From: Macrostomum lignano
Lineage: Eukaryota
Direction: 5' to 3'
Assembly (NCBI GenBank): GCA_002269645.1
Contig: NIVC01000527.1
Coordinates: forward strand, 372,001 to 436,000
Length of the DNA stretch: 64,000 bases
The notes below the pieces were generated by a model, which was given only the letters and a program-made list of their open reading frames with translations, had not been told where the DNA came from and made no database searches. Both the position numbers and the translations under genes were made by a program. Shown in pieces: positions 9,067 through 55,260 of this stretch (position 1 is its first letter; each line of letters opens with the position of its first letter).

Positions 9067-9225
9067 CCTCGACTATGTTTAATGAAGCTCCCCTATCCTT
9101 TCGATTTGCTCCCAGATGTACTTTTTGACAACGCCAATGAACTAAGCATGCCAGGCAAAGGGGGATACACATATTTAAAATCTTTATGTGCAGTGTAGCA
9201 CCAATAGATAGCAGCCAGGCGCTTT

Positions 9226-23590: not shown

Positions 23591-25107
23591 TCAAGTCTTG
23601 CGTTGTAGAGCAGGACGGTTTCGACCACCGCCCATTCGCATTGTGCCATGCGGATGGAGAAGCTCTGAAAGCACGTCAGAGTGAACTCGCGCAGCCTCAC
23701 CAGCACGCATATGAACCATTTTTAGTATGTGGATGAAGATGCGTCTTATATTTCCAATTCTATTAATGCTCAACTAAGTTCTAAGTCGCCAGCTGCAGTT
23801 GCTTCAATAAGCATAATTACTCCGCCCGTCGCGTGCAGTCACGTGAGCCGGCAGGAGCGTGTCAGAGATAAAAGTGCAAATCCAAGGAAGCGAAAAGCCG
23901 GCGGCTGGCCAGAAACTCACTCCCTGAAGGCTTCTTCTGCTACGCCAAGCTTTAATTAGTAACAGAAAATGACGAGCACTGCTTTCAATGGTGAGACAGG
24001 GCGTCTTCGCGTCGGCAGTTTTCTCATCTCTGAAGTTCTCACATTTTCCTGCGAAGTTTTGCATTTAAAATAATCCAGAATGTACTTAGCCTTGTCAGTT
24101 GATGCATTTGATGCTGGACGGCTGATGGATGACGCTGCGTCAAGACTCTGCAGACAGGTTTGGAAGACATGGCAGACAGCTTTTTAAGGAAGGAGAAAAC
24201 ATGCTTTCTACACAAAGCCGATCAAAGTAAAAACACAGCACTAAAGCTGTTTGTACTAGTACTGTATCTGTCTTTGCGACAAAACATCCGACTCAAATGT
24301 TGAGTACTTTCTGCTGAGCATCGTTAGACAATGTATTAAAACTTCAGTTGTTGTTTAGCGCAGTAGCATCTGCAACTGTAGCCACCTGTTTGATGGTTCT
24401 TAGGCGCAAAAATAAGCGTTGAGGGTCGCCCAATGCAGTCTCTGATCTCTCTTGACTAGCTTCAGGCGCGACGGCTTAATGATGAAGGCGAGCTTATCAC
24501 GAGCGTATTAGAGACTCAATGCCTTTCCGATGCACATCGCTGCAATTTCTTGCTATTCGAATTGAGAATTACCTCAAACGTGACTGCTTCTCCATTACTG
24601 ACTAGAGTTTGGTAAGCCCACGCAGCTCATGCCAGATTAGTGTGGAGCAAAAGTACAAAAGTACAATTCTTTTGCTGCATAATGAAAACAAGTTGCTGAT
24701 CGGGATCCAGGGCATAAAGGGGAAAATAACACGAGAATGGCTTGGTTAAATTCCCAAATTGTGCCCAAACCAATGTGACCCGGGCATTCCTGTGGTGCAA
24801 GTGCAGCTGCGAGATTTGACTTCTTGCGAACGAGTAGCACTCTCGCCCCAAGACTAAAAGTCAACCCCATTCAGCTTTATTAATCCGGTTTTAGATTTAT
24901 GTAAATATTTCGGATCAGGAGTAGCGATAGACCGATCGATTCCGGCAACATGTGTGACAAGCTCTGACTATGGAGCTGGATTGCCTGACCTCCATTTCCC
25001 TAGAAACCAGAAACATAACATCACACCCAGCATCAATAGGGTGCTTCCGCGAACGGAAACTGGGTTGACATGACTATGGCGGTCTCATTTTAGCTGGCGT
25101 ACTTGCT

Positions 25108-25916
25108 GACGCCCCTCCTAGCCCCTCCCTTACACCCATTCTAGCCCCTCCCTCACACCCATTCTAGCCCCTCCCTGACACCCATTCTAGCCCCTCCCTT
25201 ACACCCATTCTAGCCCCTCCCTTACACCCATTCTAGCCCCTCCCTGACACCCATTCTAGCCCCTCCCTTACACCCATTCTAGCCCCTCCCTTACACCCAT
25301 TCTAGCCCCTCCCTTACACCCATTCTAGCCCCTCCCTTACACCCATTCTAGCCCCTCCCTTACACCCATTCTAGCCCCTCCCTTACACCCATTCTAGCCC
25401 CTCCCTTACACCCATTCTAGCCCCTCCCTTACACTCATTCCAGCCCCCTCTCTGACGCCCCTCCTAGCCCCCTCTCTGACGCCCCTCCTAGCCCCCTCTC
25501 TGACGCCCCTCCTAGCCCCCTCTCTGACGCCCCTCCTAGCCCCTCCCTGACACCCATTCTAGCCCCTCCCTTACACCCATTCTAGCCCCTCCCTTACACC
25601 CATTCTAGCCCCTCCCTTACACCCATTCTAGCCCCTCCTTACACTCATTTCAGCCCCCTCTCTGACGCCCAGTCTAACCCCCTCTCTGACGCCCAGTCTA
25701 ACCCCCTCTCTGACGCCCAGTCTAACCCCCTCTCTGACGCCCAGTCTAACCCCCTCTCTGACGCCCAGTCTAGCCCCCTCTCTAGCGCCTTACACTCATT
25801 TCAGCCCCCTCTCTGACGCCCAGTCTAACCCCCTCTCTGACGCCCAGTCTAACCCCCTCTCTGACGCCCAGTCTAACCCCCTCTCTGACGCCCAGTCTAG
25901 CCCCCTCTCTAGCGCC
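25108..25916. repeat. Compound C-rich minisatellite: 23-bp unit TAGCCCCTCCCTTACACCCATTC interleaved with a related 24-bp unit CCCCCTCTCTGACGCCCAGTCTAA
   Basis: Direct tandem periodicity with two related unit families. Confidence 0.95.
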
Positions 25917-26275
25917 TGAACCTTGAAGTTGCAGAACTGTACTTAAACTTGATCCCACAGCCTGTTGCCATCCAAGAGATGTTTCTGCTCAATTTATGGC
26001 ATACAGTTTTTTGCAGTTAAACAAATGAAAACCCGCGTTGACAGAAATTAAAAAGGCAGAGTGTAGCCGCTGAGCAGAGCAATCGGTTCAAAAATGAAAC
26101 GGACTTTCGTGGCGCTTTCATGCGTATAAACTATTTAGTGCTACTTACTGGGTGTTGCATACCTGTGTATCTGGCGACTGAAGATGCCTTGGTAATTCAA
26201 ATAAAATGCCTCGACACCTGTGCCCCAGAGAAGGTTTGCTTATTGTTGTTGGAGTTGGGGTTTATCACTCGTGAA

Positions 26276-26560
26276 GTTTATGGTTTTTGGAGTTTATGGT
26301 TGGTGGAGGTTTAGCGTTGGTGGGGGTTTATGGTTGTTAGGGGTTTATGGTTGGTGGGGGTTTAGCGTTGGTGGGATTTATGGTTGGTGGGGGTTTATGG
26401 TTGGTGGGGGTTTATGGTTGTTAGGGGTTTATGGTTGGTGGGGGTTTATGGTTGGTGGGGGTTTATGGTTGTTAGGGGTTTATGGTTGGTGGGGGTTTAT
26501 GGTTGGTGGGGGTGTATGGTTGGTGGGGTTTATGGTTGGTGGGGTCTATGGTTATAGGTT
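26276..26560. repeat. G/T-rich imperfect tandem repeat (TTTATGGTTGGTGGGGG variants)
   Basis: Recurrent TTTATGGTT[G/T]GTGGGGG motifs. The GGLWLLGVYGWW ORF is a repeat artefact. Confidence 0.9.
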
Positions 26561-26913
26561 ATTTAATTGAAAGGTGAAGTCTGTTGCTAGGTAAAGACCC
26601 ATCCTGTTACGCCACAAGGTTATCAAGTTTAGGCAAGGCATCAGCACCAGAGTAGCTAAATGTATTCCAGTTCGGAATGCAGCCTTCATTCAGGAGCGGA
26701 AACGAGCTGCACCTGGGATCTGATAAACCGTTGCACTGGCAAACTCAGATACTGCAGAATCTTGCAGAAGGCGTGCATAACAAATGCAAGCGCGGGGGCG
26801 ATCGCTGCACGCGTTTTTACGGGCCTCTGAAACCTTGTAGTTTCTTTCCTGCGTTACTGCTGCTTTGCTACAGCTTCTGAATTAACTAGTCTTCTGCCAC
26901 CACTACCTGTCCT

Positions 26914-27648
26914 GTCACTCTGCATCACTCTCAGTCACTCTCTGTGACTCACTCTCCTCAGTCACTCTCTGTGACTCACTCTCCTCAGTCACACTGTCAC
27001 TCTTTGTGACTCACTGTCCTCAGTCACTCTTTGGGACTCACTGTCCTCAGTCACTCTTTGTGACTCACTGTCCTCAGTCACTCTTTGTCACTCACTGTCC
27101 TCAGTCACTCTCTGTGACTCACTCTCCTCAGTCATACTGTCACTCTTTGTGACTCACTGTCCTCAGTCACTCTTTGGGACTCACTGTCCTCAGTCACTCT
27201 TTGTGACTCACTGTCCTCAGTCACTCTTTGTCACTCACTGTCCTCAGTCACTCTTTGTCACTCACTGTCCTCAGTCACTCTCTGTGACTCACTCTCCTCA
27301 GTCATACTGTCACTCTTTGTGACTCACTGTCCTCAGTCACTCTTTGTGACTCACTGTCCTCAGTCACTCTTTGTGACTCACTGTCCTCAGTCACTCTTTG
27401 TCACTCACTGTCCTCAGTCACTCTTTGTCACTCACTGTCCTCAGTCACTCTTTGTCACTCACTGTCCTCAGTCACTCTCTGTGACTCACTCTCCTCAGTC
27501 ATACTGTCACTCTCTGTGACTCACTGTCCTCAGTCACACTGTCACTCTTTGTGACTCATTGTCCTCAGTCACACTGTCACTCTTTGTGACTCATTGTCCT
27601 CAGTCACACTGTCACTCTCTGTGACTCACTGTCCTCAGTCACTCACTG
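26914..27648. repeat. Minisatellite, 27-bp core unit (GTCACTCTTTGTGACTCACTGTCCTCA) with 35-bp variants
   Basis: Direct tandem periodicity. The unit has an internal GTCAC/GTGAC inverted pair and TGACTCA. Confidence 0.95.
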
Positions 27649-30357: not shown

Positions 30358-30744
30358 TACTTGTGTTGCAGACTCGATCTGTGTTGCAGAGACTCGATCT
30401 GTGTTGCAGCGTCTCTGTGTTTCAGACTCGATCTGTGTTGCAGACTCGATCTGTGTTGCAGCGTCTCTGTGTTGCAGAGACTCGATCTGTGTTGCAGCGT
30501 CTCTGTGTTGCAGAGACTCGATCTGTGTTGCAGCGTCTCTGTGTTGCAGAGACTCGATCTGTTGCAGCGTCTCTGTGTTGCAGAGACTCGATCTGTGTTG
30601 CAGCGTCTCTGTGTTGCAGAGACTCGATCTGTGTTGCAGCGTCTCTGTGTTGCAGAGACTCGAACTGTGTTGCAGCGTCTCTGTGTTGCAGAGACTCGAT
30701 CTGTGTTGCAGCGTCTCTGTGTTGCAGAGACTCGATCTGTGTTC
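30358..30744. repeat. Minisatellite, 36-bp unit (GACTCGATCTGTGTTGCAGCGTCTCTGTGTTGCAGA) built from two related ~18-bp halves
   Basis: Direct tandem periodicity. The overlapping ORFs are artefacts. Confidence 0.95.
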
Positions 30745-32301
30745 CAGCAGCCTTGACCTCTGGGGCAGGGCAGCTCTCTATGCACTATAGCAGCTTATAA
30801 AAGTAAAGGTAGAGGAGAATATTTGCAAAGGCACGTGTCAGTCTGAGCTTGGAGACAGGGCAATTTACACGGAATCCGATATACCCAGTCCGCATTAAGA
30901 GAAAGCCCGCAAAATCGATTTGCATTAGAAGACGCGGGGGTGGAGGGGGGGTGCGGCTTCTCTGCTTGGCCAAATCTGTCCATCCAGACTACTCTGTGCC
31001 GAAATTTGAACCAATGCTTCTTCGCCTATAGCTCGATCCTTTCCAGCGCGTTTAGCCCACTATCCCGCCCTCCTGAAAAGATCCCGATCCCGCATCCTGA
31101 CTGGTGCCGCCATCTGCAACCCTAAGAAGACCCGCACCGTTTCCTTCCTGCAGCCCGCATTGTAGCCCAACCTGGGTTCAAATCTGAACTTTTACAAGCC
31201 TTTCCGTAATGATATTTCATTTCCCCTCTTCTTTCTTTCCTGTCCATCAGGAGGACGTGAGCCCAGTGTCCGCTATGCGTGGAAAAGGTCTTCCTTTCTA
31301 GCCCCTTGCTCGGAGGGGATTAGGAAAGCGAAAGAAGTCTCCCGAAAAAAGTACACACGATAGTCCCCTGCCCTAGGAGGGTTCGTCCTGATTCCCATGA
31401 CTGGGAGCTGCCCGCCCATCTAGGAATGCGCGGAGAATCTTGGGGAGCGGCCTAATATGTTCACCTTGCCAGTGTACCCTGGAAGTCAGATGCAGTCTAT
31501 TTATCTTGCCGGCATTGAAACTCCATGGAAAATTGGACATAGACTAGGAAATCTAATGTAAGTTAGCTAACAAAGGGTGAGGGTCGCATCAGGTCAGCTG
31601 ACCCACATCTACCCGCCCCGAGAGCTGGCTCACGAAATCGGAATTGAGTAGCCAGCCGTAATTTCTTTCTACCTTTCTCTCTTCTCTTGACTGAGCGGTA
31701 AAAGCTGGGCGCACTAAATACTGGATCAGGAATTAATGGTACTTCTTCATTTGACAGTGCATGCACAGAATGATCTGGAGATAGCAGGCAGCTTTCGGGC
31801 ACTGGGAGTAACTTTTGGCTCCCCGCCTCCTCTCCCCGAATCAAGAGAGAAGATCACATTTTCCGGCTGAGTCAGAGCCCTCGCTGGGTCGCAAAGTCAC
31901 TATTTTTAGTCTGTAAAACACGTACCAGCACATAGTACAAGATTGCAAATGATAAAGTCTGACTCAAACGCTGAACATGTCTTTCTTACTACTATGGCCT
32001 AGAGATACGAGTACAAAGTGCCTGATTACAAGCTAAAAAAATTGCACTGACTAATTGGCAAGCTTTTGTCTAGCCATGACCGAACAAGCCAGACACAAGC
32101 GAGGGTTCCGTACTGATTGATATGCTACCCAGTTACTAAGGGTTCTAAGGATTTGAAGACTCGGCGCTTGATTGCTTGTGCTAAAGAAGCGCTTGTGCTT
32201 AATAATTATGTTTTTGTCTTTGTTCCCGGCACTGTCAGGGTCCACAGAGTATTCTGTATATTCTGTCGTCAGGGTCAGTTTTAGGCTCAAAAGCTCTGGA
32301 T

Positions 32302-32889: not shown

Positions 32890-33620
32890 TGAAGGTGACT
32901 GGTCCTGGCGAAGGAGTCTCTCATACCTGGAGGTGACACTGGCTAAGGACACTCTTCCATACCTGGAGGTGAAACTGGCTAGGGAATCTTCCATACCTGG
33001 AGGTGACACTGGTTAAGAAATCTTCCATACCTGGAGGTGACACTGGCTGGGGACTCTTCTATACCTGGAGGTGACACTGGCTGGGACTCTTCTATACCTG
33101 GAGGTGACACTGGCTGGGGACTCTTCTATACCTGGAGGTGACACTGGTTAAGGACTCTCTTCCATACCTGGAGGTGACACTGGTTAAGGACTCTCTTCCA
33201 TACCTGGAGGTGACACTGGTTAAGGACTCTCTTCCATACCTGGAGGTGACACTGGTTAAGGACTCTCTTCCATACCTGGAGGTGACACTGGTTAAGGACT
33301 CTCTTCCATACCTGGAGGTGACACTGGTTAAGGACTCTCTTCCATACCTGGAGGTGACACTGGTTAAGGACTCTCTTCCATACCTGGAGGTGACACTGGT
33401 TAAGGACTCTCTTCCATACCTGGAGGTGACACTGGTTAAGGACTCTCTTCCATACCTGGAGGTGACACTGGTTAAGGACTCTCTTCCATACCTGGAGGTG
33501 ACACTGGTTAAGGACTCTCTTCCATACCTGGAGGTGACACTGGTTAAGGACTCTCTTCCATACCTGGAGGTGACACTAGTTAAGGACTCTCCCATACCTG
33601 GAGGTGACACTGGTTAAGAA
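32890..33620. repeat. Minisatellite, 36-bp unit (CCATACCTGGAGGTGACACTGGTTAAGGACTCTCTT), about 20 copies
   Basis: Core 33137-33580 is essentially identical copies. Left-end copies are diverged. Confidence 0.97.
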
Positions 33621-35928
33621 CTCTTGACCTGAAGCAGATTTTTTTTAAATGTGTGAAAGCAACTTTAAACCATTTTTGAAACTGCAGGCCCACTTCCACT
33701 ACTGAAAGTAGGAATCCCAGTGCACAAGCCAAGAAAAGCGACTGCATTTTAAGCAACTACCATAAAATCTTCCGGCTGTTCGGTGAGGAAGACTGAAGGC
33801 TGTTACTGTTAGAAAATACATATCATCGAGACTTAAATCTTTAGCCAAAGAATTTGGAGCGGAGAGCACACCAATTAGATGTCAGTTGTCAGAAAAACAA
33901 AAGCAGCATAAAATTCTCTTGGTTTTAGTTTGAATGCACTACGAGCGCAGATATTGTTTTCAAACCCGGCAGACCCAAGTTAATAACAAGAGCCTGCATT
34001 TATCCGCGACAAGATTCGCTTTTTAGCAAATTTTTCAAACTGAATTCAAAGTCACCAGAGCCAATGAAACTTGTACGCTGTCGTCATCACTGATTTTTAA
34101 GCCTCAGAACCGCTAGCATCTAGCAGTGGAAAAGCAAGCCACAATGGGCACCCTGCTGTAACCAAAGCCAGGGCTTCTCTTGCCACTTGCTTGTAAACTC
34201 TGTGCTAAATTCGCTCCGAGCTGCCGCATCCGCTGCGCAGTTTCACTTTTCAGTGTCGTGTCGGGCAAAAAAAGAATCTGGATTGTGAAATAATGGCGAA
34301 TTGATGGCGTACACTGATGTTGACGCTCGTACACTCGTAAGGTCACCAACAGAGTTGAATGACGCCATCAGTGCATAGGTGCTTTGAAAGGCTCGTTAAT
34401 ATAGTCGTTAATTGAGCCGTCAAATCGCACAATTGATGCTGATGTACAAAGCGACAAAAACTATAGGCAAGCCGTGCGATCTGCAGGTGACAAATAGCCA
34501 CACTTGATAGCAGTGTTGACTAGCCTTAACTGTTACAGACGCTGTAGGTTGCAATCGAAACTCTGTTGCGTCGAAATATGGAATGGGAGTTGTCGGAGTA
34601 GGTACAAGATGTTTAAAAGTTCGTTTGCATTTGGATCAGGAAATTGGGACAGCCAACCGTTATTGGATCTGGCGGAAGGCGTTGCGTCAACATGTTTGAA
34701 GTCTCCCATGAATGATCGCATTTTAGCAACTAAAATCCGGGCTCGTGAGAAACTGCAGACACTGCGAATCCAGTTACATTTATAATGCTAACCCCGTGTA
34801 ACATGTAAAATTGAATGCGCAAAAAAATGCCACGATCCCGCGAGTGCATGCAATCTGCTTGTGCCGCGATCTGCGATGAGCTCTCTGCTATGCGAGCCCG
34901 AGCGGGCACCCGGAGTTGCCCCGCTTATCAAAATTGAATTCTGGGGCGGGCCGCCTACCGACAGCAAAGTACACTTGCGCCGGCTTAGTAGGTTGGGCAG
35001 CCAGACAAGCAGACAAGCAGGCAGGCAGGCCGCAAGCAAGTGCCTGTGCAGGACGCGTGTATTGTAACTCTTCTTTTGCCTATCTGTGCACCAGTTTTCG
35101 CTCGCATGTCCAGAAAATAGTATTTTGTACGCTTGCATGAATATATAAGCTAATGCACACAAAGCATTAAGACAGTCAATGGCAGTAAAGAGAAAAATTA
35201 TCTCGACCAACCAGTTGTTAGTTGAAGATTTTCTGCTTCGAGTGTAGTCGCTTCGATTGAAACTTTCAATAAGCACTCTTCCGAACAGGTCCGAGAATTC
35301 GAGTTCGAAGAAGTCAACAGTCGCCGAATGATAGAAGCTACTGGGCAGCCAGTTCGACTAACTGGGAGTCGAAGGAATTGCAGGGAAATATTATAAAAAT
35401 GTATCCAAGCAGTGTAAGTTCATGCAGTTGGTGTTTCGTTATATAACGGTACGTCCTGTCCTGTGCTAGCATTCGCAGCTCATTAGTGCCTAATACGCTT
35501 GTACGAGCTACAACCAGCTTTGGCATACAAAATTCTGGTTGTAAAGGCATCAAAGCCACAATTGAATTGATTAAAAGCCTATTAGCAGCCGATTAGAGGG
35601 GCCCAGATGCAACTAGCCCGTGCGGTCTGGCAGGCAGGCGTAGAACACGCACATACGGCAGCAGGCCGACTGTCTGAGCGATTTAACGCGTGTGGTAAAC
35701 AAGCCAACGCGCACTCGTGCGGTACAATTGCACTTGATTGCTCTCCGCTGAGGCACCAAAGTTTCTGCATTTATTCTTTATCTCTTGTTTCTCCTCAGCC
35801 TGACTGGAAGGTATCAAAGCAAATACCGAGGCTACTGAGTGTTTCTGCGCTTCGGTTTCTTGTATCTTTCTTATCGTGGACTTGCTCTCGGGACTTTGAG
35901 TCTTCAAAAGTTCCAAAGATCAAAATTA

Positions 35929-37588
35929 ATGCTAGCTAGAGGACTTGAAGTCATCCACTGGGAATTTAACAGTTCCAGTTTTCTGACTAACATGCCTTTC
36001 CTCATTCATACCCAGCACTCCGTTCTGGACTACTATCTGACGAGCGATTCCGCCCAACTGTCTGCTGCGGCGGCACCGGTCAAACAGGAGTCGAACCCGG
36101 GCCCTGGCATGTGCCAATCACCGCCGAGCGACTCGTCAGCAACAACACTGCTGTCTTCAGCGGAAACAGCCACATGGGAGTCGCAAGCGCAGATGATGCC
36201 ACAGCGTCGCAAAAGACGAAGTAAAATTCTGCTCACAGCTAACCCGACAGTTGAGCAGGCACAACTGTCACAGCACCTACAGAAGCAGCAGCTCCAGCAG
36301 CAGCAACAGTCGCAGCAGCAGTGCAGCGTTTGCGGCGACAAGGCTCTGGGCTTTAACTTTGACGCCGTCACTTGCGAGTCCTGCAAGGCGTTCTTTCGCA
36401 GAAATGCAGTGAAGGAAAGGGTGAGAAGGTCTAACTTAGTATTTTACAGGTAATTAGAGCACCATTGCTAAAGCTTTTAATGCCATTTTTAGCCGCACCA
36501 GTGCAACTTTGACAACAACTGCGAAGTGACCGTCGCCACGAGGAAATTCTGTCCAGCCTGTCGACTAAGCAAATGCTTCCGGGTTGGGATGAAGAAGGAA
36601 TGGATTCTGGGTGAGTCAAATTTGAGTGAGCTTATTTCAACATTTTTTCGTACGAGTGTTGTGTTTTTGAATCGTACATTGCATCGACGTCAACTTCTTA
36701 GGCGCTGAGCAGCTGCAGAAGCGGCGCGAGCGAGCCCACCGTAGCCCATGCAGCACGAGTTTGCAGCAATCCACGGTGCTGCAGCTACTGGCCCCGGAGG
36801 AGGATGAATCCGAAACACTGGCCTGGTCTGACAGGCGACCTTTGTCGCAGTCCTGCCGCTGGCTGCTCGATGCTGTGCGCTCCGCTATCAACGATGTCAT
36901 GGACAACGTAGGCAGCGACGACTCAGAGAAGATCCGCTCTAGCAACAGCTCCGCTCTGGAGACCCCGTTCGCCATCACCCTGTCTTTTGTAACGCGGTTC
37001 GTGAAATTTGTTAAGCTTCTGCCCGAGCACAGTATGATCGACCAGGCGGACATGATAGAACTCATCAAGGGCGGTGTGTTCCACTTCACCTTGATGCGGG
37101 GCGCCTGCACCTACAGCTCGGAGGAGGACAGCTTTCAATTCGAGTCAAACCAACTGGGCGGCCTGCATCGAATGCCGTTGGACAGCCTGTCCATGTCGCT
37201 GTCCTCCTGGCCTGCTGGGACGCAGTTGCTAAGCCGCTATCGGCAATTCCTGCGCTCTTCTTCAGCCGCCAGCGAAGGCGACAGGCTGGCTCTGACCCTG
37301 CTGCAGCTGGTTGACTTCTACAACCCATCGCGACCTCTGCTGCGCAATATGCGGCTCATCGACCGGCTGCAGAAAGGCTACATCCAGCTGCTTTGGCGCC
37401 ACGTGGAGCACACGTGGCCAATGGCCCGTTCGCGGGCTGTGTTCTTCGACCTGCTAAATCGACTGTCCGACCTGGACAGGCTCGCCACCGACTTCAGCAA
37501 CCTCTGCCACAGCGTCGGCTCCCTGGGCGATCATCTCGATCCTCTACTGGTGGAGGTGTTCAATCTGAGGGGCTCAGCGGCAGTGTGA
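35929..37588 (+). CDS. Hr96: Nuclear hormone receptor of the HR96/DAF-12/NHR-8 (NR1J) group
   Basis: Exons ~35929-36420, 36493-36610, 36702-37588, phase-consistent. C4 zinc fingers [29 protein letters not shown] and [37 protein letters not shown]-box ESCKA is diagnostic of NR1J. LBD with [17 protein letters not shown] and AF-2-like DPLLVEVF. The start codon is uncertain. Confidence 0.88.
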
Positions 37589-40113: not shown

Positions 40114-40121
40114 TATATAAA
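40114..40121 (+). promoter_or_regulatory. TATA box of the NIT-cyclase gene
   Basis: TATATAAA about 80 bp upstream of the ATG at 40194. Confidence 0.5.
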
Positions 40122-40193
40122 GGCAGCTCACGTTGGCGCAGTCTCAAAATTTAGCTGATAAGTTTCAAACTGGCCCGTGTTTTCGTTACGGCC

Positions 40194-42578
40194 ATGGGTA
40201 AGAAGGGAATGCTCAGGCCTGAGGTGAAAATCACTCCGGCTATCACGCCGTCTGTTTCATCGATGAGCAGCACCTTTATGAACAGAAAGGTGAGCGGCTC
40301 TAGCAACTCGCTGAACTCCGGCAGCGAAACCAGCGGCAATGTCAGCCGCATCAATCGCATAGTGCAGGAAAGGCTGCTCTACACATCCGTGCTGGGGAAG
40401 TGCTACAACTGGTTTTACAGCAGCAACGACCAGATTGGTGCGAAATCATGAAATTTCAAAATAATGTCAGCACGTATTTCATAATAAAAAGTTGCGGTTC
40501 ACTTTTTCTAAAATGTGCAAATTTCACATTTGCAGGCAAAAAGCGCCAGGTGGCCAAGATCATGTTCCTTCTGATGCTGCCCATAGCGGCCTTGGCTGGA
40601 GTGACAATCCGCAACCTAGTCGACTCCAGCAACGAGAGCAAGATGAAGTCGAACATACGAGACGCAATGCGCTTCGCTATGGAAACCGGCTCACTGATTG
40701 ACAACTTGCAGAAAGAACGAGATCGAGTCGCTCTCTTCATTTCGAGCAAGTCGTCCGAGACGCGAATCCTAATCGAAGAGATCTTTCGCCAGACAGATCT
40801 CAGTCTTGCGGCGCTGCGCTCGTGGAACCAGGACTCTGAAGAGCTCACTTTTATGACTGCGTTTGAAAGCAAAGCCGATTTCCAGAAGATCTTGGACATC
40901 AGACGGAGAGATATTAGCCTCAACCCGGATTTTCGCAACCCGCTGGAGGAGATCAGGTTTTATACAAACGACGTGATCAGAGTGTTCATCAACTGGATCA
41001 CGGATACTATTCAACAGAGTAAAGATGGCTCTCTGTGGAAGAATATGGTTGCCTACTTACTTCTAGTAATGGCGAAGGAGAACACGGGTGTTGAACGGAG
41101 TCTGGGAGGAATATTCTACGCCCAGGGTGGCTTCCGCATGGACAGCGAATACCAGTGGTACTTGCGCACTTACTTCCAGGGTCGAGCGCAGATCAAAGAT
41201 TCCAAGGAGTACAGTGATATTGTTCGCGAATTGACCAACCAGACGGCAGTGGAACTCGCCCCGGTCGTATCCAGCATTGAGACAATGCGATCAGAGATTC
41301 TTTCTCGCTCTGAGCCGCAAAACATGGGAGGCCTGGAGGCATCCACGCTGTGGTTGAACAACATGTCCATCTACATGGAAGGTCAGCAAGGATTGCTTGT
41401 CAGTCTAGGCGAATTCGCATTAAACTCGATTGCAACAGACAAGTTGGACGATTATAATTCTTTAATGCTCAACCTGGGTTTCTTCCTCATCGCACTAATA
41501 TCCAGTCCGATCGTCATTTTCATAGTTCACGCCATGATGGATGACATTAGCCAGTACTCTGGAGCCCTAATGACTCAGGCTTGCGCCATGACTAAGGACC
41601 GAGAGCGAGCCGACCGCCTGCTCTACGGCATGATGCCGCAGTCTATTATTGAGCAACTGCGCCTGAGGAAAAAGGTGTCCGCTGAGACTTTCACCGAGGC
41701 CAGCATCATGCTGGTCCGGCTCGCCAACTTTGCTTTTGTCGCCAACAACAGCCAGCCAGGACAGGTGATCGAGATTCTGAACGGTTTGTACAACATGTTC
41801 GACGAACGAATCGAGAAATTCGACTGCCACAAGCTGCAGACAAGTGGCGATTGGTTGCTCATAGTCAGCGGAGTACCCATTCGCAATGGCAGGCGACATG
41901 CTCACGAGCTAGCTGTTCTAAGCATCGACTTGAGGCACCACGCCCTGCACATCCGGGTCGCCCACATGCCAGGCGTTTCGATGCACCTTCAGATTGCAAT
42001 CCATTCAGGTGAGTTTTAGGCCATACCAATTTGTAGTTGTTTGCGAATTTGAAGGTTATCAGAACTTTGCTCGAAACAATAGTCGCAACATTGCAGGTCC
42101 TGTTGTAGCTGCCGTTGTGGGCGTGATTTTTCCGCGATATTGCCTATTTGGTACGACGTTGTTTGCCACTCAGAGCATCGAGGCCCAATGCGAACAGGGC
42201 ACTGTGCTGATTTCCGAGGCCACTCGCAACCTCATAGCCTTCGATAGCACTTTTGTAGCTGACTACAAGAAGACTGTCGAGGTGGGGGTAAGTCGTAACC
42301 GTCAGGTGATGCTTCAATAATGCTTAGCGACTGCGTTACGAACCGTTAGGATAACGTAAGAAAGTTTCTATCATTTTTAAGAAAATAAACCTTCAACCAT
42401 GCGGTACTGGTTCAGTACCAATTTTTTCTTTTTCAATCCAATCCAATGACAACATAATCTTTAATCGTTACAGCAGGAGGGTGAGACGGTACGCGTGCAC
42501 GAACTGAAGACAAAGAAAGGCTACGAAGAATCGCTGGGCTGCAGTCCTAACTGTCAGGGTGACAACGGCACCGCCTGA
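40194..42578 (+). CDS. Two-TM NIT-domain guanylate-cyclase-like receptor (NIT-GC) with a degenerate catalytic domain
   Basis: Exons 40194-40437, 40536-42008, 42097-42287, 42474-42578, phase-consistent. TM1 IMFLLMLPIAALAGVTI. NIT motifs LIDNLQKERDRVALFI and MAKENTGVERSLGG. TM2 LMLNLGFFLIALISSPIVIFIV. Coiled coil ERADRLLYGMMPQSI. Class III cyclase fold SGVPIRNG..HA, IHSGPVVAAVVG..FPRYCLFG. Confidence 0.88.
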
Positions 42579-44449: not shown

Positions 44450-47400
44450 ATGGAATCTGTGAGTCATCGCCGAATCGCCGTACTGTTCGTGCAGCTCGCC
44501 TGTCTGCTGCTTGGAGCCAGCGTGAAGCCAGCCATAATAGGTACGATGCCTTAATTAGACTAAGTTACAACTAATAATTACCTTATTAGTTACCTTATAA
44601 TTAAAGTGCTTATCTGGTTACTAGCCTGAATGAACTTGTTTGCTCCCTTAAGCATGTGTTGTAGTTTTTTGGTCGCCAAGCCCCGCAAAACCTCCGCGAG
44701 CTTGCTTGTGGTTCAGAGGTTCTCCTCAGTGCAAGCATAGTTATTGTCACTGCAGACACCAAACATTATCGTGTGCTTTCACTGTTGCATGAATTTCACT
44801 AAATATTTGTATAGAGTATCTACTGTATTCCCTGTACCAGAATTTACTAGGCAGCAGAGTAGACCAGCGTCCAAAATGCGTCCTAATCTCACGCCAAAGT
44901 CTGTGGGTTCGATTGCTCAGTGTGCGACTGTGCGACTGTCGCTTTGGTTTGATGCAGTGCCCAAAGCCCCTGCGAACTATAACTGACTATATAGTTCCCA
45001 AATATTCGGGTCAGAATTTAATTACCTGCTACAACCAACATAAAGGCGAAATATTTTTCAATCAACTATAAATTACTTTGAATTGCACGTTGTAAACATA
45101 AACCGTTCGTTTATGCACCCCTCATTCTAGCCATAATAGGTCAGCTGATGTTTGTGTGACATCATCGTCCTGATTGTAGCGCCGAAAAGTTAAACCTTGT
45201 GAAATATTTGCCTTAACAAAGCGGCTTTTTAACTAAAAGTTATTCTAACTGAGAAAATTTTTATTTTATAAGAAAACTCCTACTGCACAATAGCACGCAC
45301 GTACTTAAACAAATGGTTTGCCAATAAAGTTTCTGATTTGCATCGAACTATTTCTAATGAATGACAATGGCAGCAGTGCCTCCATATTCGACGGGAATGT
45401 GCGATTTTCTGTTTACAAACCGAAGGCAGCTTTCTAAAACACATTTTTTGTTTAATTTTAGTTCTTGCACCTGGTAAATTTATTTAAGCACCATTGAACA
45501 ATAAAAATACTTCATTCTAACAGTGAATTCAAAGCTTCGTAACCATAACGTAACCTGTGTTGAGTTACGTAAAGGCAAAGCAGGTTATCCATACCTAAGT
45601 AGAAGACATCTATCAGACGGACACCACAGTATTAATTTAAAACATCTAATTTCAGGTGCTTCAAACAGTGCCCCGGACATGTACCTGTGCAGCAACCTCA
45701 ATACCAGCTATGTCACTCTGCCAGGTAACGCGTGCAGCAACACAGCCTCTTTCATTATCTACATCCTAGAGGAAGTACCCATAGGTACGTGTGTGATTTC
45801 ACGCTCCAGACTCCTGGATCAGTATTTTCTTTCATGCAAAGCAACCAATCGTACTCACAGGTGTTCCGCTGATTCAGTTCGAGGCGAGAGATCCAGAGAA
45901 TGACAACGTGGCAATGACGTTGGTCGGCAAGGATCAGTCCATATACTTCTTTAGCGTAGTGTCCTATCCCAACAACAGAACTGCCGTGCTCAAGCAAAAC
46001 AGCCGCCTGGATGCAGATGTATGATATAGCTATCACAGAGTAAAATTAATTTGCCGAACTCCAACTTTGCTAATAATTTTTAAGAAGGTTTGATTTTTAA
46101 AATCTTATCATTTCAGTCTCTCAACAAGATCAGTCTGGTGCTGCAAATCAAACTTAACGATGGAAATCTTAACGAGGTGAGCGCAAACGAGCGTAACGCG
46201 TCGTACGTACCCTGTATTGCTAATGTTTCCACTCCGTTGACTTCTGCAGATAACGAAGGACTTTGATTTAGTCATTGTGCGCGACATCAATGACAATCCG
46301 CCAGAATTTCAAAATCTTCCCTACCGATGGCTCATTCCCGAGGTACCAAAATTGTTTTTACTTTTTCTCCTCTTTACTTTCTCAATCAATGCTTCTCAAT
46401 GTTTTAAAGCAACAAAAACGAACCAAATATACTTTCCAGAACGAACCCCCTTCAAGCAATTTAAGTCTAACGATCGAAGTCGTGGACAGGGACCAGAGTT
46501 CATCCGGAATGCTTATTACGTACAAAGTAATTACTTCTCTGTAGGTTTTTTGAACAGTTCGATTAAAGCAAACATATATCTACGCTCGTAGAGTTAAGCT
46601 TTACCTCGGAAAACTGGAGTGTAGTTGGCAGGTGCACGAGATGGAGCGGCATGAAAATTATTTCCGATGCACAAATTTGCTCTAGAGCTTTGTTTCAAAC
46701 ATTGGATGGGGAAGGAAATTCCCTGCGTGTGCAAATACGCTCGCACAAGCATCCCTTCCCATCATATCCCATCCTATCCAGCTTACCTTTGTGAGCTCAA
46801 CTGTCAGCGGTTTTGCAAGCTTTGTGTTTGCATGTTAATACGTAGAAGAATGGGGTTTCAGTCCGATGATAGATGCGATGTCAAGTCATGCGCGGCATAA
46901 AACACAAACCGAACGGTTTCAGTACAGCGCGAGTAATTCCCATCTGATGCTCGTATGTTGTGTATAAGCTCGACATGATATACATTTAGTTCAAATCGAG
47001 ACGAGGTTTTTCAGTAGTGTTCATTTATAGCTGTTTTATCAGCCTAAATCAATGTAGAGGCCCCGATGGAGAGAGGAAATCTAATGAATAGTCTAATAAA
47101 TCGATGCACTGTAAATGAACCCCGTTGACCAAATGAAGGCTGAAGCTCCTTAATCACACCAATTCATGCAAACGGAATAGCCACCTGTAATGACGATGAA
47201 ACAAAAACCACTTGTCTCATTTGAAGGACGTATCCGGTTCAACTGCTAAAAATTTGTTCAGCCTGTCGGATCAGACGACCTCCACCTATTGCAATCCAAG
47301 CGGCAGCTGCGTGGGCCGACGCTTCACCCGCGTGCTGACTATCCTTCGAGCTCTAGACTACGAGGTGAGCAGCTTTTATCAGTTGTCGGTCAATGCCACC

Positions 47401-50400
47401 GACTTGACTGACGGCGGCACGACCACAGTCACCGACGTCATCATAAACGTCCAAGACAGACAGGACACGCCACCATTCTTTGATGGCATTCCCTATCTAA
47501 AGAACGTGCCCGAAAACTCACCCAGCGGTACTCTGGTCATCACACTGATCGCCAGAGATGGAGATAGAGGCGTGCCAAATTCGATTAGCTATCATTTAGA
47601 TGCTAGCAATGCGTTCTCAAAGTACTTCATCCTCAACAACGTCACCGGAGAGTTGCGCACAAGCTCAGTGAAACTGGACCGGGAAGGAGCCGACATCCTG
47701 GCCATATTTGGCACTATCGACCTGCCAGTGATCGCAAAGGAAATGTCCTCCGTGGTCCAGCCGGCCAATATCTCGCAGGCAGGCACAACGGTGCGCATTA
47801 CTGTTGACGATGAGAACGATTTTTTTCCTACTTTTGAGTACCCTGTTTACAACGGCAGCGTGCCGGAGAACACAATGGCGGGCGTTCCAGTTAATCTGTT
47901 CTCACAAATCAGCATTTCCGATCTCGACGCGGGTGATAATGGTGTTTTTAACTTAACCCTGATGCGCAATGGCCAAGTCTATCGTGACTTTGAAGTATCA
48001 CCGGTGACCATCAGCAGGCAAGGTGCCGTGTTTATAATGGTCAAGAATTCCAGCTTTCTTGATTATGAGACTGTTCAAAGCGTAACATTTCAAGTGAGTC
48101 AGATTTTCAATTTGTACGGTTGGCGCACGGCGCAAGTATAATCTACAAAAGTTCGCTTTGTACCTTACAGATAGTTGCGACGGAGACAAGAACAACTCAG
48201 AGATTTTCCAGCACGGCCACTGTTCAGCTGCAGATTCTTGACGTAAATGACAACCGGCCGGTGTTCAACCAGTCTGGCTACGCCTTTACTATTCCTGAGA
48301 ATTCGCCTATCAACACTTTTGTCGGCAGAGTTAAGGTCGGTAACATTTGATTAGGCAGGCTGGGAAAAAACTGTTGATTTCCTAATGAACCGTGATAATT
48401 TTTCCTTTCAGGCTACGGATGCGGACAGTGGAGCATTCGGAACAGTTTCTTATGCTCTGGACGGCACAGATGCGTTCAAGTATGATAACAACTTTTCTAT
48501 CATTCTGATTGTTAATTTTTTGTTTTTTTTCTAAATTGGTGAAAACGTTATTGGAATTTATAAAATATTTAAATATGTGCTTCAGATTTCGCATTAATTC
48601 AACAACTGGAGACATATTCGTTAATGTGGACGCGGACAAAAACCTGACTCTGCTGGACAGAGAGCGCTTTTCAACCATATTTCTCACTATTGAGGGCCGA
48701 GACGGAGGCGGGTTCGTAACGGCAGTTCAGATGGAAATTTTGTTGAGTGACCAAAACGATCAAGCGCCAGTTTTCACCAGATTAAGCTACTTCGGAGTTG
48801 TCAAGGAGAATTCTTTTACATTTGATTCGCCAGTTCAAGTTGAGGTAATTGTCGAGAGTTTTGTCTTTTAATGCGAAGGAATAACAGCAACATTAAAAAT
48901 TTGCCTTTTAAAATGTTTTAGGCAGCAGATAACGATTTAAAGGGAAGCAACAACAGCATCGTTGAGTACAGAATCATCGGTGGGGATTTGGGCGGTAACT
49001 TTAACATTGTCAGCACTAGCGGTCTTCTCATGATTAGGACGCCACTCAACTACGAGTCTCTGCCTTCCAGCATCGTAAATTTGACAATCTCGGCATATGA
49101 TCTGGGTGTGCCGTCTCTAAATAGCAGCATAAATGTACAAGTTACTGTGCTAGACCAGAACGACAACAGTCCGATTTGCACGTACGCACTTTTCAACGCA
49201 ACAGTGATGGAGAACGCAACTTCGGGCACGCAGATCCTGCAGGTGAATGCCACAGATGCGGACCCGCCTGGCTCCGAGAACTCTCGCGTCTTCTTTCGCA
49301 TTCAAACAGGTGCCGCTGACAAGTTCACAATCGATGGCAACACGGGTTGGATTGTGGTGGAGCGGGGTGCAGACCTGGACGTCACTCGGTATGGGAGCCG
49401 ATACAACCTGAGCATCATTGTGTACGATAACGGCACTCCACAACGCAACGGTACCTGCATAGCAGTAATATTTGTTCGAGACGTAAACAACCAACGGCCG
49501 TACTTTGAAGTTCCAACGAGGCGCGAGACGGTCCAGGAGAACTTATCACTGAATCAACCACTGCCCATAACGCCACAGTTTACAGCGAAAGATCCAGATA
49601 CTACTTCTAACCTGCAGTATTCTATACTATTCAGTCAGATGAGTGCCACAGAGGGCAACGGCCAGCAAGTGTCGGTTAGCAACTATAACTACACAGATTT
49701 GCTGTACGTTTCAAGTACAAACGGAACATTGTTCGTAAAAAACATTTTGGACCGCGAAAAAGCTCAAGAGATTCAAATTCCGATTTTTGTTCAGGACCTG
49801 GCAGCAGAAACGCCACTTCCAGTGCAGACAGCCACGGGTACACTTATTATAACCCTGTCCGATCTGAATGATGAATCTCCGGTGTTTCAGTTGCCTGCTG
49901 TGAACAATACATATCGTATTACTGTATCAGAAGGGCTGCGGCCACCGACAGATATCAGCTTGAAAGCACTTGCTACGGACCCAGACACATCGAATCCTCC
50001 TCTGGTTTATAGCATCAGTCCACCTAGTACGATATTCAGCATCGACACTAACACAGCCCAAGTGTCTTTGAAGACGGCATTAGATCGCGAAACGGCTGAT
50101 CAGCATCAATTCTTTGTGTTGGTCAACGACAGCATTCACATCACTACTGCAACAGTATACGTTAACGTTAGTGATTTCAATGATGTTACGCCTAGTTTCT
50201 ATCAATTTGCTTCGAATCTGAGCATATCTGAAGCAACCAGCGTCGGCTCGCTTTTGACTAGGGTGCTGGCATACGACAATGACACTGGTCTCTTCGGGAC
50301 TGTCCACTACCGAATTCTCAGTGGAGGTGGCGGAAAGTTTGCTCTAAATGACACCAGCGGCGAGCTCAGGCTGGGCCAGGCTCTCGATCGAGACGTTCCC

Positions 50401-53400
50401 GGAGGCGAAGAGTACAGTTTGCTTATTGAAGCATTTGACAATCCTGGAAGTGCAGACAGCCTTCGGACAAGCAGAGCAATGATGATCAGCGTACTTGATG
50501 TCAACGACAATCCGCCACGATTTGCTCAGGACAACTTCACGATCACGTCGTTACTGGAGAGCATGGATTCGAATCAGTTAATTCGGGAAATTAGTGCAAC
50601 TGACGCCGATACCGGTGTCAACGCGCAGATCAGCTTTTCTCTGCGTGCCATCCCAGGTCAAAACTCTGACGCCTTGAATCTATTCTTTGTGACAACAAAA
50701 CAATCTGGATCGGTATTCTCTGCAGCAATATGGACTCGAAAGAGTCTTACGAGAGCTGTCGGTTGGTATAACCTTACTTTACTAGCAACAGATGCTGGTA
50801 CTCCAACAATGACAGGATCCACCAATCTTACATTCTTCATTGCCGACGTAAACGATCACAGTCCGGTATTTGTCTATCCAAATCAGACACAGACGGTGAT
50901 CCAGGTAAATGAATCCACGAATGCTTCGAGCACAATCGGTAAGCCCCTTTTAGTAGCCAAGGCGATAGATCAAGACTACGGAAACAACACTATAGTTCGA
51001 TTCGACCTTACGTCAAGTAATGGTGACAACGCAGCATTTAATATAGATGCCGTCTCTGGCCTCCTGACAGTGGCCACAAACCTGAATAGAGAGGTCAAAA
51101 GCGAATACCGCTTCTCGATAAAAGCTTACGACCTCGGAGTGCCGCCGCTAACAACGATGGTCAACATAGTTGTTCAAGTTTTGGATGTGGACGAAAGTCC
51201 GCCAGTGTTTGGGCCGGATTCGCGGGTGCAGCAGCTGAGCGTGCCAGAGAATTCAGTTCCTTCGTCCCTCATCCCGGGGCTCACCATTTCTGGCGTTCGG
51301 GTTGGATCTATAGCGAAAGCTTCCGACCCGGATGTAACCGACAAGTCAACACCAATATGCTATTTTATGTTAGGTAAGTCTCGTCAGTATGATTAACTTA
51401 TAGCTTTTGAGAGGTGCAAAACTAAAATTCAGTCATCCTCTTCCGAATAAATGAATGCAGACCCAGTCTACTATCTGTTCTATCTAAATAAGACCAGTGG
51501 AGATTTGTACGTCTTGTCGGCGTTGGATCGCGAAGCAGCTCCTCAATACAATCTTCATGTTATTGCAGTTGGAGCGAGTCAGTGCAACTCAAGTAAGATA
51601 ACTTCCTTTTTTCTCGATAGACACGAATTCATGTCTAAATAGAAACGTTAAAACCCACTTACAGCGGCATACGAGTGGAAGAATGCAACAAACCATCGTG
51701 TGAAGAGGTACTTGGATACAACACCCATAGCCTACAATCCAAATAATGCCACAATGGCCCTGATTGTAGTCAATGTTGGTGACGTGAATGATAATCCACC
51801 AGTGTGGAAAAATTCGATTTACTACGGTGGAGTCAGAGTCACAGATCCGCCAAGCACCACAGTGTTCAACTTTGCCGAGTTTGTCACCGATGCGGACATC
51901 GGGAATAACAGCTTGCTCACATTCGGCATGACCGGACCAACGCCCGACAACCAGAAGCTGAGAACGCAACTTGCCAGCCGTGAAATCTTGGACTCCGTGT
52001 TCACTCTGGACAATAGGACTGGGGTTCTGAAGACCGGAGACAAAACATATTTCCAGGAAACCATGACCGGCGCCGTATCGTTCAATGTGACCGCATCAGA
52101 CTCAAAGTATTTGGCCACCACCATGTGCACAATTTACCTTCTGAGCCTAGAACAGCAGCTTATTGTCGTCATGAGTGGAGTTCCGGCAAATGCCACGCGA
52201 ATTCGAGACGCCTTCGTTAGCTACCTGTCTAATATTACAGGATGGCGAATTGTGGTCGATAACATTGTTACACATAAAAACGATGACGGCACTGCCGACA
52301 ATAGCAAGTGAGTACATGCAACTGTCGCAATTGGTACTAATCGATTTACATATATCGAAGCATTTTTCTTTGTGCACATTCTCACTTGTTTTCAGAACCG
52401 ATATGTACATCCATGCGATAAATCTTAAAGACAATAGCATTGTTCCCGCGGCAACTGTGCGAGACAAAGTCGACCTCCTGTGGCCTGAGATGGTTGCTAT
52501 TTACAAGACATTTGGCGTCCTCCAAGTCAAGCTGGCATCGCAGCCGGCCTCGTCTGACTCGATTCTGGAAATAATGCGGATCGCCCTGATTGTGGTGGCC
52601 TGCAGCCTGGCCATATTGCTGTTCTTTGCCTGCGTCTCGCTCTGGTCGTGCCGACGGATGTACCGTAGAAAGTTGAAGGCCGCCACCGCCGTTGCATTTG
52701 GTAATTGATTGTAGCGAGCGTATTTATGCTTTTATAAAAAGTCTGATTTTTAACGCTCCGTGACAACTTTTATTGCAGGCACGAATGGACACTCAAACGC
52801 TCCTAGAACACCTGGAACTAATATGCACACATACGAGGGGTAAGCTCAGACTAATAAGTTATCTAATTATTAGTGTGATTGTACTGGCATGCATTAGAGA
52901 GCCACAATTTCTCAAACACTTACACGTAGCACGCATGCTCATTAATATTTCTTCAGTTTGTCCTATTTCTAATCAGGTACAGGTATGTAGAGGCGTGTCT
53001 TTCTCCTCACAAATACCAAGCACAAACGTTTTTTTCTTCAATTTAAAAATTCGGCTGATCCCGTCCGCTGCGATCACAATTTTGTAGAGCTGATTTGAAA
53101 TCCTTTTTCACACCCCTTACACAGCTCGAATCCCATCTGGCTGGAGGCGTACAACATGAACCAGTACGACAACAAGAACTTTGAAAGGTATGCATGCGTA
53201 GATGAATGCTTTTTGGCTAAGTACCATGAAATTCAGGGGATTTGCCGACTTCTTGTAATTCTAAGTTGCTTCAAACAATAGCTCAACTGTTTTCTTGGCG
53301 GTGCGCCATAAAAGAAAGTCAACCTCTACACTATAGTTGGCACTTTGGGGCGAGAGAATTGGTTGCTAAGCTACAGAAAAAATCTGAATTCTGCTTCCTC

Positions 53401-54766: not shown

Positions 54767-55260
54767 GGTTCCACTTTCCTACCCCATTAACCCTCCATTC
54801 TTGCCTAATGTACATTTATCGCTGAATCAAGCCCCTTCAACTTTCTTACCCCATTAACCCTCCATTCTTGTCTAATGTACATTTATCGCTGAATCAAAAA
54901 GCCCCTTCAACTTTCCTACCCCATTAACCCTCCATTCTTGCCTAATGTACATTTATCGCTGAATCAAGCCCCTTCAACTTTCCTACCCCATTAACCCTCC
55001 ATTCTTGCCTAATGTACATTTATCGCTGAATCAAGCCCCTTCAACTTTCCTACCCCATTAACCCTCCATTCTTGCCTAATGTACATTTATCGCTGAATCA
55101 AACCCCTTCAACTTTCCTACCCCATTAACCCTCCATTCTTGCCTAATGTACATTTATCACTGATTCAAACCCCTTCAACTTTCCTACCCCACTAATCCTC
55201 CATTCTTTCTCAATCTACGCTCGTACATTTTCGCTGAATCAAGCTTTTTCCACTTTCCAA
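54767..55260. repeat. Minisatellite, ~67-bp unit (CCCCATTAACCCTCCATTCTTGCCTAATGTACATTTATCGCTGAATCAAGCCCCTTCAACTTTCCTA), about 7 copies
   Basis: Direct tandem periodicity (spacing 67, 70, 67...). The last copy is diverged. Confidence 0.95.

Follow-up and report, generated by a model that had tools for sequence, protein, structure and literature searches.

A gene at positions 40194-42578 of a 64,000-nucleotide (nt) stretch of the Macrostomum lignano genome (contig NIVC01000527.1, positions 372,001 to 436,000; the whole stretch is called the window throughout) probably encodes a catalytically dead, selectively maintained NIT receptor, in which the sensor, the helices and the cyclase fold are kept and the catalytic pocket is dismantled. 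The gene has four exons separated by three GT..AG introns on the forward (+) strand, where all of its features described below are located, and its coding sequence of 2013 nt is translated to 670 amino acids (aa). By descent the protein belongs to the metazoan NIT-domain receptor guanylate cyclases (NIT-GCs), and its best full-length matches were animal NIT-GCs, with E values from 1e-117 to 1e-60. Six of the eight canonical catalytic residues were found to be lost, and the losses hit both half-sites.

Catalytic residues of the cyclase homology domain

The active site of class III cyclases is formed at the dimer interface, where one chain contributes two Asp residues and an Arg, and the other contributes the base-specifying pair together with Asn, Arg and Lys. 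The eight key residues, tabulated across the two chains in PMC6005667, were used as the yardstick for the flatworm protein. Residues were placed with a phmmer search against the Protein Data Bank (PDB), in which residues 430-647 aligned on human GC-A and the alignment remained gapless until one residue near the end; residue placement is therefore unambiguous.

A preliminary description of this DNA had listed substitutions in three motifs, and all of them were recovered in the GC-A alignment with exact codon coordinates. The first metal-binding Asp is replaced by Arg476 (41717..41719), where FSDIVGF has become LVRLANF. The guanine-specifying Glu is replaced by Gln516 (41837..41839), where KVETIGD has become KLQTSGD. 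In the third motif, where GDTVNTASR reads GTTLFATQS, Phe595 (42162..42164) stands in place of the ribose/transition-state Asn and Ser599 (42174..42176) in place of the transition-state/phosphate Arg. Two further losses had not been listed. The phosphate-binding Arg of the RIGIHTG motif, equivalent to Arg574 of soluble guanylate cyclase (sGC) alpha, is replaced by Gln567 (41990..41992), and nothing in the sequence VGQEGET corresponds to the phosphate Lys of KGKG. Only the second metal Asp, Asp520 (41849..41851), and the base-specificity Cys, Cys588 (42141..42143), are kept, according to both the alignment to GC-A and the family alignment described below. The resulting pattern is R476/Q516/D520/Q567/C588/F595/S599/no Lys, compared to the canonical D/E/D/R/C/N/R/K.

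When the two halves were considered separately, the metal half was found to be without the first Asp and the Arg, and the other half without Glu, Asn, Arg and Lys. The earlier claim that both half-sites are lost is thus upheld, and the two additional losses extend it. Partial catalytic sets are also present in sGC alpha/beta and in ODR-1/DAF-11, which depend on dimerization (PMC6005667, PMC5225109). There, one half-site remains complete in each chain and complements the partner, whereas both halves of the flatworm protein are incomplete and no partner could rescue it. Measured against the eight residues, the protein would lack catalytic competence. Because the chain can supply neither residue set, no functional site would be formed in a homodimer or in heterodimers, and we infer that the protein is unable to make cyclic GMP (cGMP) or cyclic AMP (cAMP) as a homodimer or in any heterodimer.

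Domain architecture and the NIT sensor

The protein consists, in order, of a disordered N-terminal tail, a first transmembrane segment (TM1), the NIT domain, a second transmembrane segment (TM2), a short signaling helix and the class III cyclase domain. TM1 (40559..40609, residues ~90-106) is preceded by the basic sequence GKKRQVAK and was assigned from hydropathy, the charges of its flanks and a helix in the AlphaFold2 (AF2) model. The NIT domain (40694..41383, residues 135-364) was identified by Pfam PF08376 with an E value of 2.4e-20 and a score of 74.4 bits, inside the range of 59-103 bits found for canonical relatives. TM2 (41468..41542, residues ~393-417) coincides with a hydropathy maximum of 2.42 and is followed by the signaling helix or coiled-coil linker (41549..41677, residues 420-462), which includes RERADRLLYGMMPQSIIEQL and aligns to the dimerization helix of GC-A. 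The catalytically degenerate cyclase homology domain (41678..42476, residues 463-637; introns 2 and 3 fall within it) was matched by Pfam PF00211 with an E value of 1.1e-29 and a score of 103.7 bits. No Pfam match to a kinase domain was found anywhere in the protein. Between the NIT and cyclase domains Pfam gave just a weak match to the HNOBA C-terminal helix, and the distance from TM2 to the cyclase domain is 45 residues. Pfam and hydropathy therefore agree with the topology that had been proposed for this protein, namely TM-NIT-TM-coiled coil-cyclase with no kinase-homology domain. Because the basic flank lies on the N-terminal side of TM1, the distribution of charges places the NIT domain outside and the cyclase domain in the cytoplasm.

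The NIT motifs LQKER143D and GVER269SLGG are retained, so that the arginines R143 (LQKER) and R269 (GVER) are kept as in metazoan NIT-GCs, and the ectodomain carries three N-x-S/T sequons at N114, N316 and N357. When the NIT region was searched by sequence against the PDB, a marginal match to NasR (4akk, E 0.19) was obtained, and the alignment covered the GxER motif. In the AF2 model the NIT domain is all-helical with a predicted local distance difference test (pLDDT) score of 80-95, and a single continuous helix spans residues 347-447.

The same arrangement, in which a NIT domain enclosed by two transmembrane segments is connected by a short helix to a C-terminal class III cyclase domain and a kinase-homology domain is lacking, is found in NIT-GC1 and NIT-GC2 of the annelid Platynereis dumerilii, which belong to the same sequence cluster. 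Placozoan and other metazoan NIT-GCs likewise combine a TM-flanked NIT domain (PF08376) with PF00211 (Moroz et al. 2020, PMC7400543). In the available text of that study NIT proteins are treated as cyclases, flatworms are not among the listed phyla and no discussion of catalytic degeneration was found.

Divergence is concentrated in the active site

An exhaustive HMMER family search was carried out over 1.84 billion representatives, and the 150 best matches were aligned. Family members were matched in nemerteans, hemichordates, molluscs, echinoderms, brachiopods, annelids, amphioxus and M. lignano itself. A column was taken as highly conserved when identity among 50 canonical NIT-GCs reached 85% or more. 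The flatworm protein kept all eight such columns in the NIT ectodomain and five of nine in the signaling helix, where the remaining four changes are conservative. In the cyclase domain it kept 36 of 74. With 38 of 74 columns changed, compared to a median of five, the flatworm cyclase domain was the most degenerate of 127 representatives, and the pattern is therefore not one of chance. The Pfam cyclase score was correspondingly low, canonical NIT-GCs reaching 194-232 bits. In neighbor-joining (NJ) trees computed for each domain, the cyclase domain had the longest terminal branch of 118, and the NIT branch ranked 24 of 70.

The conserved cyclase columns were divided into the scaffold and five active-site motifs, which were FSDIVGFT in beta1, YKVETIGDAYM in beta2-beta3, the Arg of RIG, GDTVNTASRM in alpha4 and RG..KGKG..TYW in beta7-beta8. 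Changes affected 32 of 39 columns in the active-site motifs compared to 6 of 35 in the scaffold (Fisher p = 2.8e-8). All six scaffold changes were conservative (L/I, P/A, G/A, M/F, I/V and L/I). The dimerization-arm segment, IHSGPVVAAVVG..PRYCLFG, was nearly all retained, and only one single-residue insertion or deletion (indel) was found over 218 residues in comparison with human GC-A.

When the coding segment was allowed to evolve neutrally in a simulation, at least one stop codon had appeared in 90-98% of the runs by 30-51% amino acid change; the simulation used substitutions only, and indels would raise the loss of frame further. The preliminary description had also called the fold intact, and it is predicted to be so. 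The pLDDT of the AF2 cyclase domain was 80-95, as in the NIT domain, and Foldseek superposed the modeled domain on the cyclase domain of GC-A (9bcv, cryo-electron microscopy) with a template modeling score of 0.91 and a root mean square deviation of 2.1 Å.

Following the cyclase domain there is a C-terminal motif, G[FY]E.SL.C.P.C, which in the flatworm protein is GYEESLGCSPNC (residues 652-663, 42519-42554). It was common to the query, a Tubulanus protein (P0003), a second M. lignano protein (P0005), a Haliotis protein (P0006) and a Lottia protein (P0009), and it was detected in none of the remaining 145 family representatives. A lipidation, metal-binding or targeting signal is a possible function for this motif.

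None of the marks of a pseudogene was observed, that is, neither a disrupted frame, nor lost splice sites, nor uniform neutral divergence. Because the losses are confined to the active site, the open reading frame (ORF) is open and the fold is predicted to be intact, we infer that fold and sensor have been kept by selection while the active site was abandoned, which argues against uniform decay.

Degenerate half-sites across the NIT-GC family

The flatworm protein is not unique, and NIT-GCs degenerate at one or both half-sites are common across phyla. In a catalytic census, 83 NIT-bearing representatives could be scored at all eight key columns. The canonical class accounted for 47 of them. 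A further 22 were alpha-like, keeping the metal half (Asp/Asp/Arg) and having lost Asn/Arg/Lys, with the limit that a few of these calls depend solely on the alignment-sensitive Lys column; nine were beta-like, having lost the metal half and kept Asn/Arg/Lys; and five, the query included, had lost both halves. A degenerate half-site was thus present in 36 of 83 representatives (~43%), across phyla. Both alpha-like and beta-like forms were found within one nemertean species in two cases, Tubulanus (P0012 and P0016) and Lineus (P0028 and P0015). This is the pattern expected of obligate heterodimers such as sGC alpha/beta and ODR-1/DAF-11, the latter being an established obligate heterodimer of Caenorhabditis elegans (PMC5225109), and the co-occurrence suggests that obligate heterodimers may be present in a family whose members have until now been regarded as homodimeric cyclases.

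No prior description of a pseudo-cyclase of this kind, or of a Macrostomum guanylate cyclase, was found in literature searches, and the available text of Moroz et al. 2020 and of Jokura et al. contains no mention of dimers, heterodimers or inactive members. This points to family-wide half-site degeneration in NIT-GCs as an undescribed pattern.

One of the annelid proteins, A0A8J1TRA6 of Owenia fusiformis (P0050), has independently acquired the same Asp-to-Arg change at metal site 1 and otherwise retains Asn/Arg/Lys. It is speculative, but an Arg at this position might pair with the remaining Asp and fill the metal site.

The nearest relative of the flatworm protein by NIT domain was a canonical paralogue of the same species, A0A1I8GKN0 (P0005 above; distance 0.61, rank 1 of 69). 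At the key positions this paralogue has retained D/E/D/R/C/D/N/R; it shares the C-terminal motif G[FY]E.SL.C.P.C with the degenerate protein, to which it is only 34-38% identical overall. Because its nearest NIT relative is this paralogue, the gene appears to have arisen by duplication in the flatworm lineage, followed by divergence of its cyclase domain. The database model of A0A1I8GKN0 is without ~50 central residues of the cyclase domain (..VASG to PVVAGVVG..), which is probably a missed exon and not biology.

Two bivalve proteins, WAR18751.1 of Mya arenaria (P0096) and XP_052271935.1 of Dreissena polymorpha (P0116), have the same architecture as the flatworm protein and comparably degenerate cyclase domains, in which 35-36 of ~72 conserved columns are changed and which score 97-113 bits in Pfam. 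They are mutually 45% identical over 550 residues (full length) with a very similar signaling helix, and they conserve the degenerate cyclase domain about as well as the NIT domain. In contrast to the flatworm protein, which keeps the first NIT Arg, the bivalve pair has lost it (LQxET, not LQxER), and the bivalve substitutions (DGH../EAS..) differ from those of the flatworm (RQD..), indicating independent loss. Judged by these sequences, the Mya/Dreissena pair is an independent example of a conserved, presumably dead NIT-cyclase. A clade of the query with the bivalve pseudo-cyclases, obtained in a whole-length NJ tree, was rejected as long-branch attraction, because the grouping vanished when the NIT domain was used alone and because the substitutions differ. 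In the NIT-alone tree the query had A0A1I8GKN0 as its neighbor, with the bivalve pair at ranks 16 and 26.

Gene model and surrounding sequence

A putative promoter element, the TATA-like box TATATAAAGG (40114..40123), was found ~70 nt 5' of the start codon as a consensus match only. A TAG stop lies in frame 14 codons 5' of the ATG. Exon 1 (40194..40437) begins at the ATG and encodes residues 1-81 and the first base of codon 82; its product is a Ser-rich cytoplasmic N-terminal tail that is disordered over residues 1-78 in the AF2 model. Intron 1 (40438..40535, 98 nt) is followed by exon 2 (40536..42008), which encodes TM1, the NIT ectodomain, TM2, the signaling helix and the N-terminal two thirds of the cyclase domain. 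Exon 3 (42097..42287), beyond intron 2 (42009..42096, 88 nt), encodes the dimerization-arm region, in which PRYCLFG is conserved, and the alpha4 motif in its degenerate form, GTTLFATQS. Exon 4 (42474..42578), beyond intron 3 (42288..42473, 186 nt), encodes QEGET in place of the KGKG phosphate-Lys motif and the C-terminal motif, and ends with a TGA stop. All three introns are short and have GT..AG borders and the frame is open, in agreement with the earlier statement that the ORF and splice sites are intact.

The predicted protein was 100% identical to UniProt A0A1I8HH80, annotated as a guanylate cyclase domain-containing protein of M. lignano, and the product of splicing intron 1 agrees with this entry. 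The two models differ in two points only, the start and the intron 3 acceptor. The A0A1I8HH80 model begins at the upstream stop and not at the ATG. The acceptor of intron 3 is a NAGNAG site (42471-42479, ..acagCAGgag), for which 42474 was used here, including Gln637, and 42477 in A0A1I8HH80, leaving the Gln out.

No second copy or tandem paralogue of the gene was detected in the window when the protein was searched with tblastn, and the flanking genes are unrelated. Directly upstream is a nuclear receptor gene (35839-37588, +), in which one ORF encodes a C4 zinc finger (Pfam zf-C4, E 1e-10) and the next ORF, with no Pfam match, is a probable ligand-binding-domain exon. Downstream are exons of a large FAT/protocadherin-like cadherin gene (47212-52708, +), which encode at least nine cadherin repeats (Pfam E 3e-85) and a C-terminal transmembrane segment. 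Further away, an 876-aa ORF (57115-59745, -) lies in GC-rich sequence (0.63 at 58-60 kb) and matches the lipid-binding domain of the microsomal triglyceride transfer protein (MTP) large subunit and, weakly, Vitellogenin_N, and belongs to a large lipid transfer protein relative. An uninterrupted 813-aa ORF (19234-21675, +) had no Pfam match.

Minisatellite arrays, in which units of 17-67 nt are repeated up to 135 times, are unusually dense in the window, and they produce long spurious ORFs in every frame. They were found at 857-1656, 6823-7863, 8339-9067, 9925-10612, 11553-13990, 25106-25917, 26276-27607, 30362-30748, 32911-33624 and 54769-55207, the biggest being the array at 11553-13990, in which an 18-nt unit is repeated 135 times.

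Discussion

The most likely role of the flatworm protein, put forward from its sequence at somewhat less than even confidence, is that of a non-catalytic dimer partner of active NIT-GC paralogues. The dead receptor would dimerize through the signaling helix and the cyclase arm with competent paralogues such as A0A1I8GKN0, the heterodimers would be without a functional site, and the ligand-dependent cGMP output of the active paralogues would thereby be lowered or reshaped. The presence of that canonical paralogue in the same species is consistent with such pairing, and the conserved Mya/Dreissena pair provides a precedent for a dead NIT-cyclase that is maintained. Non-catalytic members that modulate catalytic ones are known elsewhere among receptor guanylate cyclases, including NPR-C/NPR3 and dominant-negative splice forms.

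A homodimeric, non-enzymatic receptor or scaffold is possible but must be regarded as the more doubtful role. A ligand bound by the NIT domain would twist the helix, and the dead cyclase domain together with the CxPxC tail would recruit or release an effector. By analogy with mammalian adenylyl cyclase, in which forskolin occupies the degenerate site, the pocket lined by Arg476, Gln516, Gln567 and Phe595, which is neutralized and partly hydrophobic, might accept another small molecule. Such a scaffold would be consistent with the retention of the sensor, the helix, the fold and the C-terminal motif, and conservation of the bivalve dead cyclase domain at about the level of the NIT domain suggests that this domain may have a job of its own. 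However, a candidate effector is not known, the C-terminal motif being the only possible interaction motif found, and on sequence data the scaffold is inseparable from the heterodimer. Both the scaffold and the dominant-negative partner had been suggested previously and they are retained here as candidate readings; the decoy suggested along with them is the least plausible of the three. A ligand decoy or sink, lowering the free NIT ligand by analogy with the clearance receptor NPR-C, would combine an intact NIT domain with a dead enzyme, as is the case here. NPR-C binds peptides and is without a cyclase domain entirely, whereas the flatworm protein keeps the whole cyclase fold and its presumed ligand is a small molecule. 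A decoy would have no need for the signaling helix, the cyclase fold or the C-terminal motif, all absent from NPR-C, and a membrane protein would presumably be unable to buffer nitrate, nitrite and related small molecules stoichiometrically, given their high abundance and diffusibility, which makes this role very improbable.

It is just as hard to credit that the protein is still an active cyclase with a non-canonical catalytic arrangement. Asp520, Arg586, Cys588 and the overall fold are kept, but six of the eight essential residues are replaced by ones unable to bind metal or phosphate, the P-loop-like FSDIVGFT has been rewritten to LVRLANFA, and in sGC a single Asp530Ala change was sufficient to leave no detectable activity (PMC6005667). 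A reading that deserves more weight, and is nonetheless unlikely, is that the gene is a non-functional duplicate drifting to a pseudogene, its ORF still open merely for lack of time. No cyclase domain of the family has diverged further than that of the flatworm protein, the genome of M. lignano is highly duplicated and repeat-rich, as seen in the many minisatellites of the window, and the family search returned no close orthologue, nothing exceeding 38% identity. On the other hand, divergence was found to be motif-specific, with all eight conserved columns kept in the NIT domain and 29 of 35 in the scaffold compared to 7 of 39 in the active-site motifs. The gene contains no stops or frameshifts, its splice sites are canonical, it differs from human GC-A by one single-residue indel, and at comparable divergence most runs of the neutral simulation had already acquired a stop. 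Furthermore, a clade-specific motif is conserved 3' of the dead domain, and the length of the NIT branch is ordinary.

Several points weigh against a dead receptor maintained by selection and paired with active paralogues. The lack of an orthologue closer than 38% identity is one of them. Enzymatic inactivity is deduced from residues, purifying selection is argued from the pattern of conservation only, and heterodimerization with the canonical paralogue is purely a proposal from sequence; in the signaling helix the M. lignano paralogue has no special similarity to the query (rank 6 of 149). For the Fisher test, the border between active site and scaffold was drawn after the data had been seen, although the segments match known motifs. 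The argument from ORF survival is modest, with p ~0.02-0.1 when indels are not considered, and the AF2 model was built on a shallow alignment of 14 sequences.

With respect to the ligand, the preliminary description had linked the protein to nitric oxide (NO) through an annelid NIT-GC. The cited paper does show NIT-dependent cGMP production by Platynereis NIT-GC1, which has a highly conserved cyclase domain and raised cGMP after addition of an NO donor in COS-7 cells (Jokura et al., bioRxiv 10.1101/2023.08.02.551600; eLife 2023), so this part of the link stands. It is not simply transferable to M. lignano. Platynereis has nitric oxide synthase (NOS) and its NIT-GC1 is catalytic, whereas the flatworm protein has lost six of eight catalytic residues and a survey of 33 flatworm genomes, including that of M. 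lignano, reported no NOS gene (PMC10728431). Because flatworms are reported to be without NOS, environmental or microbial nitrate, nitrite or NO, or some other molecule, is a more plausible ligand than endogenous NOS-derived NO.

A broader proposal, advanced tentatively and with the chances rather against it, is that dead-cyclase NIT receptors form a recurrent, selectively maintained class of invertebrate small-molecule receptors or regulatory subunits without enzyme activity, seen in the flatworm, bivalves, amphioxus and an annelid, within a NIT-GC family built mostly on heterodimers of alpha-like and beta-like chains. In M. lignano, reportedly devoid of NOS, such a receptor would link nitrate or nitrite from the environment, or another ligand, to signaling while producing no cGMP of its own.

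To our knowledge, NIT-GCs were recognized only in 2020, and one member has so far been shown to work, as an NO-dependent source of cGMP. The present work is a sequence-based prediction for one gene, and receptor families that have expanded often contain dead paralogues. Should a substantial share of NIT-GCs prove to be degenerate at one half-site or fully, the family could no longer be regarded as a plain collection of homodimeric sensors. Which subunits pair, and which of them are dead and regulatory, would then influence what cells react to NO, nitrite or nitrate and in what way. The flatworm protein would be the cleanest extreme of this pattern, with the sensor intact and the enzyme dismantled. 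M. lignano is genetically tractable and reportedly NOS-free, and the protein may therefore reveal both NIT sensing without endogenous NO synthesis and what a cyclase fold does once it is no longer cyclizing.

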